A DNA stretch of 64,000 nt from Bacillus subtilis subsp. subtilis str. 168 (GTDB lineage: Bacteria; Bacillota; Bacilli; Bacillales; Bacillaceae), in NCBI RefSeq assembly GCF_000009045.1, contig NC_000964.3, positions 744,001 to 808,000 of the forward strand, written 5' to 3'. Shown in pieces: positions 41,543 to 55,233 of this stretch (position 1 is the stretch's first letter; each line of letters begins with the position of its first letter). The notes beneath the pieces are model-generated. The model made no database searches. It saw nothing but the letters and a program-made list of their open reading frames with translations, and had not been told where the DNA came from. The translations under genes were made by a program, and so were the position numbers.

Positions 41543-41905
41543 TTATTCTTTTAATAAAAACACATTTCCGTCTTCGTCCTTAAATTGAACGAAGGTGCCC
41601 CACTCCATTTGATTGGGCTCACCGAGAAATTCTACACCGTTTGTCTTCATTTTCTCGTATGTACCAAAGATGTCTTCGCATTCAAACACAATAGAAGCCT
41701 TCATTTGCTCTGAGCCTTTCATCATGGCTTTCGGGTAAATGACTAAACGAGTCTCGGCTCCTTTTGGCGCAACCTCCAGCCAGCTTGCTTCAGGTCCCAT
41801 TGGGTGATCCGCTGCAATATCAAAGCCTACCTTCTCTGTCCAAAATTGCTTCGCTTTCTGCTGGTCCTCGACATATACAGCAACAGTGCCAATTTGTTTG
41901 ATCAT
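41543..41905 (-). CDS. yetH: VOC/glyoxalase family protein
   Basis: VAVYVEDQQKAKQFWTEKVGF; WGTFVQFKDEDGNVFLL. Confidence 0.9.
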   Translation of the reverse strand: MIKQIGTVAVYVEDQQKAKQFWTEKVGFDIAADHPMGPEASWLEVAPKGAETRLVIYPKAMMKGSEQMKASIVFECEDIFGTYEKMKTNGVEFLGEPNQMEWGTFVQFKDEDGNVFLLKE

Positions 41906-41964: not shown

Positions 41965-41995
41965 ATAAAAAAATCAGCCGGGAAACCGGCTGATT
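41965..41995 (-). terminator. Terminator after the Gly/Pro-rich gene
   Basis: AATCAGCCGG/CCGGCTGATT stem followed by a T-run on the minus strand. Confidence 0.8.
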
Positions 41996-41996
41996 A

Positions 41997-42491
41997 TTAA
42001 AATGAGCAGCTTACAACATCGATGTGATTTGTGTCTAAGGCGAAATAAACCCAGCGGCGCCGTGAGGAATCCCAATAAAAGCCGCCGACGGATCTTCTGC
42101 CAAGGATGATCGGGTAAAACCAAAATGAGCGGCCATTGGTTAACCAGACATAGGTAAATCGGAAAAGGCAAGGACGAATGGTGATTGGTTCAACTAACAA
42201 AACGGCTCCTTGAGAACCCTGCGGTTTTGGGGGTTTCGCTGGTATTTGGGAAGGAGGAGGTCCCTGCGGCGCACCGCCGAAGCCTGGGCTGGCACCGCTG
42301 CCAATACCAGGGCCGGAGCCGCCGCCAAAGCCTGGAACAGCACCACCGCCAATGCCAGGACCGGAGCCGCCGCCAGAGCCCGGAACAGCGCCGCTGCCAA
42401 TGCCAGGCCATGGATATCGGTATTCATATTCAAAAGCAGGCCAAGGCTCATAAAAATGCCCCGCAAACATATAAGGATCAACATAATACAT
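41997..42491 (-). CDS. Gly/Pro-rich probable spore coat protein (164 aa)
   Basis: SD AGAAAGGA, SigK-type promoter, own terminator; Tyr-rich N-terminus, 16-aa Gly repeats, aromatic/Cys C-terminal domain CLFRFTYVWLTNGRSFWFYP. Confidence 0.8.
   Translation of the reverse strand: MYYVDPYMFAGHFYEPWPAFEYEYRYPWPGIGSGAVPGSGGGSGPGIGGGAVPGFGGGSGPGIGSGASPGFGGAPQGPPPSQIPAKPPKPQGSQGAVLLVEPITIRPCLFRFTYVWLTNGRSFWFYPIILGRRSVGGFYWDSSRRRWVYFALDTNHIDVVSCSF
42274..42407 (-). repeat. 48-bp coding tandem repeat, about 2.8 copies (GIGSGAVPGSGGGSGP)
   Basis: CCAAT(A/G)CCAGG recurs at 42301, 42349 and 42397. Confidence 0.85.
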
Positions 42492-42528
42492 GTGATAACG
42501 TCCTTTCTCATTGTAAACTGTACATTGC

Positions 42529-42556
42529 AGTTTATGCGGGCGGACTCTTATTGGTG
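42529..42556 (-). promoter_or_regulatory. SigK-type promoter
   Basis: Minus strand CACC-N16-CATAaacT, a full match to mACm-N16-CATAnnnT. Confidence 0.65.
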
Positions 42557-42688
42557 CATTCGCCTAAGGATATGAAGCTGGAATGCTCTCAGAGAGCAGA
42601 ATCATTTGATTTTTCTCTAGTCTTATTCACAATTCCGATTTATCATTTTATAATGAAAGTGCTTCTATTACGAAAAAGGAGACAGACC

Positions 42689-43560
42689 GTGAATATCGAT
42701 CAATTATTATATCAATATATCATAGACAACACTGCGGATATTACTGAGAAATGGTTCAGTTTGCGTTGCCAGCTAAAAGGCGAGCTATATTCCGCCAGCC
42801 ATTTAAGTGAAGAAACGAAAACACTTTTAACCGAGCAGCATACATTTACCAATATAACAATCGCAAGCGCATTTCTGGAGGATCAAACCGATTTTCAAGA
42901 AAACATGACAAAATGGGCGCAAAACGTTGCGAAAAACAGGGTAGAGCAGGATGTTCAAGTGCATGAGGTCGTAGAAGCCATATCCAATTCAAGAATCTCA
43001 TTCTGGGACGCAGTCGCCACATTTATAAAAGAGAATCAGGAGATTGTGACAAATGAGGATGCAGACCGATGGAACCGCATTGTGAATCAGTCGTTCGATA
43101 AGCTGATTATTGAATTCTCCGAGCAGTACCAAAAATTCATGCTGATGAGGCTTACATCTCAGCAGGAACTGATCTCAGAGCTTGGCTGCCCGGTCATTTC
43201 CATTGCCGATGGAATCGGGATATTGCCGCTTATCGGCTCCATTGATACAAAACGGCACAGGTCATTTTAGAAACAGTGCCGGTCCGCTGTGTCGAGAGAA
43301 AAATCACAAGCCTCGTCGTTGATCTTTCGGGTGTTCCGATTGTGGATACCATGGTGGCTCAGCAATTGTACAACCTGTCTAAAACACTTTTCTTATTAGG
43401 CGTCAAAGCCGTATTTTCAGGAATTCGCCCGGATGTGGCCCAAACATCGATTCAATTGGGGCTTGATTTTAGTGAATATGAAACGTACGGCACGCTGAAG
43501 CAGGCATTAGAAAACATGGGTGTCCGCTGTATTGTTGAGGAATTGGAAGAAAACAAATAG
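42689..43560 (+). pseudogene. yetI: RsbR paralog split by a 1-nt deletion: yetI (42689-43270) + yezB (43276-43560)
   Basis: GTG 42689 after AAAAGGAGA; PLIGSIDTKR then frameshift; adding one G after 43255 gives RAQVILETVPVRC...VDLSGVPIVDTMVAQQL (STAS) and a 290-aa ORF. Confidence 0.85.
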
Positions 43561-54325: not shown

Positions 54326-54353
54326 CACCAAGGCTGGCTTTCTCTCATATCAT
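54326..54353 (+). promoter_or_regulatory. SigK promoter of yfnH operon
   Basis: CACC-N16-CATAtcaT. Confidence 0.7.
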
Positions 54354-54468
54354 TACAGTAGATTTTGAAACCGGATTGAAATCGGACAAATTATCGGGGA
54401 AATGCCTTGATAGATTGTGAAGATGTACCAGGTTTCGAACTCAATATTCATAGAGATGAGGGGTAGAG

Positions 54469-55233
54469 ATGAAAGCGGTCATTCTCTGCGGCGGAAAAGG
54501 AACGAGAATGAGTGAAGTCACGAATGACATTCCTAAACCGCTCGCCATGATAGGCGGCAAACCGATTCTATGGCATATTATGAAAATTTATCAGTACTAC
54601 GGAGTAAACGAGTTTATTCTGCTTTTGGGCTATAAAGGAGAAAAAATCAAGGAATACTTTCTCGACTATGAATGGAAGCACAACAGCCTGACACTCGACA
54701 GCTCTACGGGAGAGGTACAGATGCTGGGGCAGCCTGAAACGTGGAAAATTACGTTTTTGGAGACTGGGGTAGATACGCTGACAGCCGGAAGAATCTTGCA
54801 GGCGAAAGACTATATCGGTGATGAAACATTTCTGCTCACCTATGGAGACGGGCTGGCCAATATCAATCTTTTCCATCTCATCAGCTATCATCAGACAAAA
54901 GGTGCTGCCGCGACTGTCACCGGCATTGACAAAGTCTCGCAGTTTGGCACCTTGACAGTTGAGGATGGCATGGCGAAAACATTTTCTGAGAAGACATCAA
55001 GTGATGGAATCATCAACGGCGGATTCTTCGTTCTTAGTCCAAAGGTTTTCGATTATTTGCCGAAGGACGGGAACACGATGTTCGAAGATGAACCGCTGAA
55101 GAACCTTGCCAAAGATGGGGAGCTTGCTGTGTACCGCCATTACGGATTTTGGACGGCCATCGATACGTATAAAAATCTCTTAGAAGTCAACAAAATGTGG
55201 AATCAAGGACAACAAGTATGGAAGGTATGGTGA
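54469..55233 (+). CDS. yfnH: Glucose-1-phosphate cytidylyltransferase
   Basis: ILCGGKGTR, PKPLAMIGGKPILWHIMK, TYGDG, FWTAIDT. Confidence 0.92.
   Translation: MKAVILCGGKGTRMSEVTNDIPKPLAMIGGKPILWHIMKIYQYYGVNEFILLLGYKGEKIKEYFLDYEWKHNSLTLDSSTGEVQMLGQPETWKITFLETGVDTLTAGRILQAKDYIGDETFLLTYGDGLANINLFHLISYHQTKGAAATVTGIDKVSQFGTLTVEDGMAKTFSEKTSSDGIINGGFFVLSPKVFDYLPKDGNTMFEDEPLKNLAKDGELAVYRHYGFWTAIDTYKNLLEVNKMWNQGQQVWKVW

Follow-up and report, generated by a model that had tools for sequence, protein, structure and literature searches.

Between yetH and yetI on the single 4,215,606-bp chromosome of Bacillus subtilis 168 lies a complete transcription unit on the minus strand. Coordinates are those of the window, the whole 64,000-nucleotide stretch of DNA that was analysed (chromosome positions 744,001–808,000), in which a gap of 783 bp separates the start of yetH (41905) from the GTG start of yetI (42689). 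Within this gap the ORF list contains a reading frame of 164 codons plus stop that begins with ATG (41997–42491, minus strand), and its product has a computed mass of 17.6 kDa and a pI of 8.95. A ribosome-binding site, AGAAAGGA (42501–42508, minus strand), was read from the sequence 9 nt 5′ of the ATG and is kept across the B. subtilis group. Directly 3′ of the stop codon, a terminator scan placed an intrinsic terminator (41972–41995, minus strand) with a 10-bp G+C-rich stem followed by a T-run; its folding energy is −16.4 kcal/mol (z = −6.2), and none of 200 shuffled sequences folds as well. An earlier sequence-only reading of this DNA had proposed a complete minus-strand unit in a gap of ~780 bp; the measured gap agrees with this, and the reading frame, Shine-Dalgarno sequence and terminator were each found where that reading had put them. 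The unit is monocistronic with no linked partner gene, and the gene is present in a single copy in the B. subtilis 168 genome.

The downstream neighbour yetH (41543–41905, minus strand) encodes a glyoxalase-family protein, and a neighbouring ABM monooxygenase gene is presumably hmoA/yetG of B. subtilis 168. On the other side, the yetI frame (42689–43270, plus strand) has no Pfam match and is followed by a separate frame with a STAS domain (43276–43560, plus strand), which we take to be yezB, an arrangement that would fit a split RsbR-type gene. Facing yetI is a near-consensus σA-type promoter, TTCACA-17-TATAAT (11/12; 42626–42654, plus strand), which stands back-to-back with the promoter of the 164-aa gene, about 70 bp away. 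Also kept in the B. subtilis group is a near-palindrome, TGTACAgTTTACA (42512–42524, minus strand), 3′ of the −10 box of the 164-aa gene and 5′ of its ribosome-binding site.

The suggestion that this gene had been overlooked holds for older strain 168 gene lists only. In the expression table of Arrieta-Ortiz et al. 2015, which follows locus order, BSU07150 and BSU07160 (yetH) are followed by BSU07170 (yetI) with none between, and a second table from 2015 names yetH, on the reverse strand, as the next downstream gene for genome positions 786306–786505 (PMC4448311), so that the yetH–yetI stretch was there treated as intergenic. Against the suggestion, automated pipelines call the gene as 'hypothetical protein' in many B. 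subtilis genomes (NCBI, near-identical relatives), and at least 1000 contigs encode exactly the same 164-residue product. A literature search found no paper with transcription data on the yetH–yetI locus, and tryptic peptides of the protein were not found in the part of the supplementary data examined from a deep B. subtilis proteome study (PMC6250715). The 90% identity cluster of P0004, which holds the 164-aa protein, also contains 120-aa VOC/glyoxalase (yetH) proteins, apparently as an artefact of clustering to which fused or mis-called neighbours probably gave rise.

A conserved gene with a repeat of variable length

Comparison of the last 86 codons with orthologues from eight other Bacillus species gave dN/dS values of 0.11–0.24 at dS values of 0.36–0.71, showing that the ORF is a genuine gene under purifying selection, as had been supposed. 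Homologues are numerous: a word-indexed search returned 94, and an exhaustive search with residues 88–164 returned 442 clusters of relatives at 50% identity, 160 of them below 1e-10. In almost all of the 442 clusters the match is the extreme C-terminus of a protein of 100–250 residues, and this C-terminal domain is 40–50% identical across classes. Residues P75, P78–80, P84, C108, W124, G137, W140, Y149 and C162 are invariant in an alignment of 53 sequences. Pfam and NCBIfam scans gave no family match for the 164-aa protein, and a PDB sequence search gave low-complexity matches only. In one B. subtilis-group allele (P0045, 172 aa) the frame shifts immediately ahead of the C-terminal domain, so that out-of-frame residues stand in its place; this reflects either a sequencing error or a null allele that occurs in nature.

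The protein is made up of four segments, all of which the sequence-only reading had described. Residues 1–29 (42405–42491, minus strand) are acidic and rich in Tyr, Pro, Phe and Trp by composition, and are conserved in the B. subtilis group. The Gly-rich tandem repeat that follows (42274–42407, minus strand; 72% G+C) was assigned a period of 48 bp (also 24) and 2.8 copies by Tandem Repeats Finder, and is translated in residues 30–74 as five and a half 8-aa units, G(I/F)GGG(A/S)(V/G)P, each with an xPGxG motif. Motifs of this type resemble elastin or flagelliform silk. Next comes a Pro-rich linker, PQGPPPSxxPxKP (residues 75–91; 42219–42269, minus strand), which contains the invariant prolines, and then the basic, aromatic C-terminal domain (residues 98–164; 42000–42200, minus strand), flanked by the invariant C108 and C162.

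Proteins of the B. subtilis group range from 128 to 213 aa in length, and it is the Gly-rich part that varies between strains and species, in line with the variable-length glycine spacer that had been proposed. The length of this part changes mostly by whole 8-residue units, so that the reading frame is kept through repeat gains and losses.

No signal peptide or membrane segment was found in the 164-aa protein, with a maximum 19-residue Kyte-Doolittle value of 1.19, and the protein should thus stay in the cell that makes it. The C-terminal domain had also been said to recur in spore-formers under a misleading label, and both were seen: some UniRef entries name relatives 'Transporter', and an ESM Atlas search matched only unnamed or 'Transporter' clusters. 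We reject this name for the 164-aa protein, which has neither a membrane segment nor a match to any transporter family.

An AlphaFold2 model was built with the 53-sequence alignment. Residues 111–160 are predicted with pLDDT values of 90–93, falling to 80–83 at the ends of the domain, and form one helix and five strands, whereas the N-terminal 70 residues stay below 40. The polyproline stretch is a coil without secondary structure at pLDDT 81–83, which suggests that it may dock on the barrel. In Foldseek the best matches to the domain are Lsm, Sm, Gemin6/7 and Hfq (E ~7e-3), with TM scores of 0.64–0.69, and up to 0.80 for archaeal Hfq, when normalised to target length. VIA-align gave Z scores of 6–7.7 across the Hfq/Sm matches, with Hfq at 6.9–7.3 and designed small barrels at 7.7; three spore-surface proteins were also among the matches, of which an Mnx small subunit (9bxa) scored 6.5, the GerQ filaments (8zra) 6.2 (rmsd 2.0 Å over 60 residues) and CgeA (9l9d) 6.1 (rmsd 2.5 Å over 63 residues), a Z of ~6 being ordinary for small β-barrels. 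The last 65 residues are thus modelled with confidence as an Sm-like small β-barrel. A four-copy complex prediction with residues 92–164 scored 0.02 and is neither support for self-assembly nor evidence against it.

A mother-cell type promoter

The promoter (42528–42556, minus strand) begins with CACC, in which the AC at 42555–42554 is separated by a 17-nt spacer from a −10 box, CATAAACTG (42536–42528). The sequence-only reading had claimed a CACC-N16 promoter at this place, and the string CACC-N16-CATAAACT at 42556–42529 matches that pattern exactly. The motif alone is not above chance within the window, where the CACC-N16 pattern occurs three times against 1.3 expected, and the looser AC-N17-CATAnnnTR twice against 2.1 expected. 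Its weight comes from its position and its conservation across species, not from the string by itself.

Conservation was assessed at 24 orthologous loci from whole-genome searches, for which start codons were chosen by ribosome-binding site and conservation and the upstream DNA was aligned. The loci come from at least nine distinct lineages, among them large-genome Bacilli and two members of other classes. Of the 24 loci, 22 have a CATAnnnT(A/G) box 36–47 nt 5′ of the start codon. The background frequency of this box in the B. subtilis 168 genome is 4.35e-4 per position and strand, so that one would be met in a 12-nt window about 0.5% of the time. A promoter of mother-cell type is kept across genera.

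An AC lies 16–17 nt 5′ of the −10 box in 16/24 loci, comprising all nine of the B. subtilis group together with L010, L014, L015, L019, L022, L023 and L029. Loci L010 and L019 have a perfect −10 box, CATACGATA (CATAcgaTA), and as the upstream gene in both of them ends in a terminator ahead of the promoter, the gene is an independent unit there too. The Paenibacillus-like loci lack the AC, and two loci, L011 and L020, are a better fit to σE spacing (TGATAG-N13-CATATGAT or AATATGAT).

A CATA-type −10 box is common to σE and σK promoters. The σK consensus of Helmann and Moran has AC at −35 and CATAnnnTA at −10, with 16 or 17 nt between them. In strain 168 the arrangement AC-N17-CATAAACTG has this layout, and the −10 box matches CATAnnnTA at eight of nine positions, the last base being G and not A. 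Read against the Helmann and Moran consensus, the −35 spacing of strain 168 is a poor fit to σG or σE. A σG promoter was also considered and rejected: the −10 box is unlike CATxHTA, and 20 nt separate it from a GAATG element. It is safe to say that the conserved promoter has the features of a mother-cell sigma factor type, and in B. subtilis σK appears to be a better fit than σE.

Directly 5′ of the −35 element is a TAGGC box (42562–42566, minus strand), a candidate activator half-site whose position is the same in every one of the nine B. subtilis-group loci and in L010, L012, L014, L019, L023 and L026. The GerE box is RWWTRGGYnnYY, located near or upstream of −35. In strain 168 the TAGGC lies at about −44 to −40, and only about seven of ten specified positions of this consensus are matched. 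It agrees with the TRGGY core and could mark a putative GerE site, at a typical activating position.

Elsewhere in the window, a CACC-N16-CATATCATT string (54326–54358, plus strand) with the same layout as the promoter of the 164-aa gene lies ~110 nt 5′ of a 254-aa ORF (54469–55233); this is the yfnH position to which the sequence-only reading had pointed.

Relatives, known assemblies and proposed role

The domain is present in 26 of 41 close and order-level relatives and in 9 of the 401 genomes sampled across Bacillota, and the gene, which so small a share marks as no core sporulation gene, is an accessory one. All nine carriers in the phylum sample have SpoIVA, but so do 325 (81%) of the 401 genomes, and the co-occurrence says only that no carrier is a non-sporulator. 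The architecture of the relatives varies. In a few Clostridium proteins one to four tandem copies of the polyproline linker plus barrel are followed by DUF4163/PdaC and DUF3298 domains; such DUF4163/DUF3298 fusions occur in P0095, P0096, P0099, P0105 and P0228 (C. tunisiense, C. senegalense and metagenomes), and NCBI names the fused relatives 'DUF3298 and DUF4163 domain-containing protein' or 'RsiV family protein'. DUF4163 with DUF3298 is the pair found in RsiV and PdaC. Another relative, P0206, has a head of His/Tyr/Lys/Asn-rich repeats. No obvious signal peptide was seen in relatives with these other architectures, which would fit, though it does not prove, a modular protein that is made in the mother-cell cytoplasm and has its role at the spore surface.

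Two spore-surface proteins invite comparison. CgeA is the product of a late mother-cell gene and a substrate of CgeB, and GerQ (YwdL) is σE-dependent and recruits CwlJ. Both have a flexible N-terminal region and a C-terminal core (PMC11405398, PMC13577073); the GerQ core forms nonameric rings that stack into filaments (PMC11405398) and that of CgeA a hexameric doughnut (PMC13577073), as seen in ring assemblies solved in 2024–2025 (PMC11405398, PMC13577073). The crust protein CgeA (PDB 9l9d) resembles the 164-aa protein in being small, with a disordered N-terminus and a C-terminal small β-barrel, but there is no family-level sequence match between them. CgeA is a solved hexamer, whereas for the 164-aa protein we infer oligomerisation. 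CgeA also lacks the Gly tandem repeat, the GPPPS linker and the flanking Cys pair, and it is glycosylated at Thr112.

The coat protein GerQ (PDB 8zra) likewise has a low-complexity N-terminus, in its case Gln/Gly/Pro-rich, and a conserved C-terminal barrel, one that forms rings of nine subunits; it is without the Cys pair and polyproline motif of the 164-aa protein. Membership of the GerQ family (PF09671) was rejected, as the profile gave no match and hhalign against B. subtilis GerQ gave a probability of 2.4%. Because Z scores of ~6 are common among small barrels and sequence homology to GerQ was not found, the comparison is an argument that the two may work alike and not a family assignment. 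The best structural matches, Sm, Lsm and Hfq, share the arrangement of a helix followed by five bent strands. We nevertheless reject membership of that family: the fold is there, yet no LSM or Hfq match was found even at E ≤ 1. The sporulation promoter and low-complexity head of the 164-aa protein are unlike the context of Sm/Lsm/Hfq proteins. Like the 164-aa protein, coat proteins of the CotG type contain a tandem repeat that stays in frame and varies in copy number among strains and species. The repeat chemistry of CotG is Lys/Ser/Arg as against Gly/Pro/Val/Ile in the 164-aa protein.

With moderate confidence we favour the interpretation that this is a monocistronic late mother-cell gene, most likely under σK control, for a structural coat or crust protein with a self-assembling barrel. 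In the mother cell, at a late stage, σK RNA polymerase would most likely transcribe the gene, perhaps with the help of GerE at the putative TAGGC site, and the product would be built into the outer layers of the spore, either coat or crust. Three parts would make up this product: an acidic head rich in Tyr; a disordered spacer of Gly and Pro, variable in length and with xPGxG motifs like those of elastin; and the invariant polyproline linker with the basic, aromatic Sm-like barrel between the two invariant cysteines. The hexameric rings of CgeA and the nonameric rings of GerQ suggest by analogy that the barrel may self-assemble and anchor the protein, while its flexible N-terminal part would reach outward and might become cross-linked. 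We prefer a place in the coat or crust because the protein has the same build as GerQ and CgeA, with a disordered N-terminus and, in those two, a ring-forming C-terminal core, and because its relatives bear other coat-like low-complexity heads such as that of P0206.

The architecture shared with GerQ and CgeA (PMC11405398, PMC13577073) would also suit a different function, in which the gene is still a mother-cell sporulation gene but the Sm-like ring is an adaptor that recruits or presents another factor, in the way that GerQ recruits CwlJ or that CgeA serves CgeB as substrate, or in which the gene is driven by σE and acts earlier. The clostridial fusions of one to four domain copies to RsiV/PdaC-like DUF4163/DUF3298 modules are in keeping with an adaptor, and the σE-like spacing at L011 and L020 with σE, as is the CATA box that σE and σK promoters have in common. 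We consider this alternative unlikely: there is no linked partner gene beside the monocistronic unit, the −35 region of strain 168 fits AC-N17 better than the σE ATA box, and a repeat spacer of variable length is more typical of structural proteins.

A more far-reaching idea, which we regard as speculative and rather improbable, is that the protein is the founding member of an undescribed and widespread spore-surface family, acting as a tunable elastic element of the coat. The Sm/SH3-like barrel would bind the invariant GPPPSxxP of a neighbouring molecule and be locked by the two invariant cysteines, giving rings or chains linked through elastin-like springs, the length of which would differ from strain to strain, and in the clostridial versions as many as four such modules would be strung onto an RsiV-like domain of the lysozyme- or peptidoglycan-binding type.

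It is improbable that the gene, though protein-coding, has nothing to do with sporulation and specifies, for example, a stationary-phase or matrix protein. The scarcity of the domain, found in just nine of the 401 genomes, would be in keeping with such a role. Against it stand the CATA-type −10 box at a fixed distance from the start in many genera, the lack of a secretion signal and the presence of SpoIVA in every carrier found. A scan of the gene's strand for σA-like promoters returned only one weak candidate (9/12), overlapping the start codon, which also argues against it. That the stretch is no gene at all, but an ORF that arose by chance in a G+C-rich repeat, or else a riboswitch or other structured non-coding RNA, is hardly credible and is in practice already refuted by conservation. 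The listing of genome positions 786306–786505 (window 42306–42505) as a riboswitch-like candidate in a 2015 entropy scan (PMC4448311) is attributable to the 72% G+C of the coding repeat. Against a non-coding stretch stand a dN/dS well below 1, the identity of the domain across classes with its invariant Cys, Trp and Pro residues, a confident structure model, and an Rfam scan in which no family reached threshold and the best match, on the terminator, scored 19.9 bits against a cut-off of 97.

As it stands, then, the 164-aa protein is most likely a structural protein of the spore coat or crust from a previously undescribed family. Work on sporulation takes B. subtilis 168 as its reference organism and treats that strain's inventory of coat proteins as nearly complete. 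The 164-aa gene is absent from the gene lists behind arrays, regulon maps and proteome databases, and would therefore have escaped the studies that use them. The family to which its product belongs, with 442 clusters, has no Pfam or NCBIfam model and no description at all. Its natural spacer-length variants form a series with which to test how the mechanics of the coat are set.
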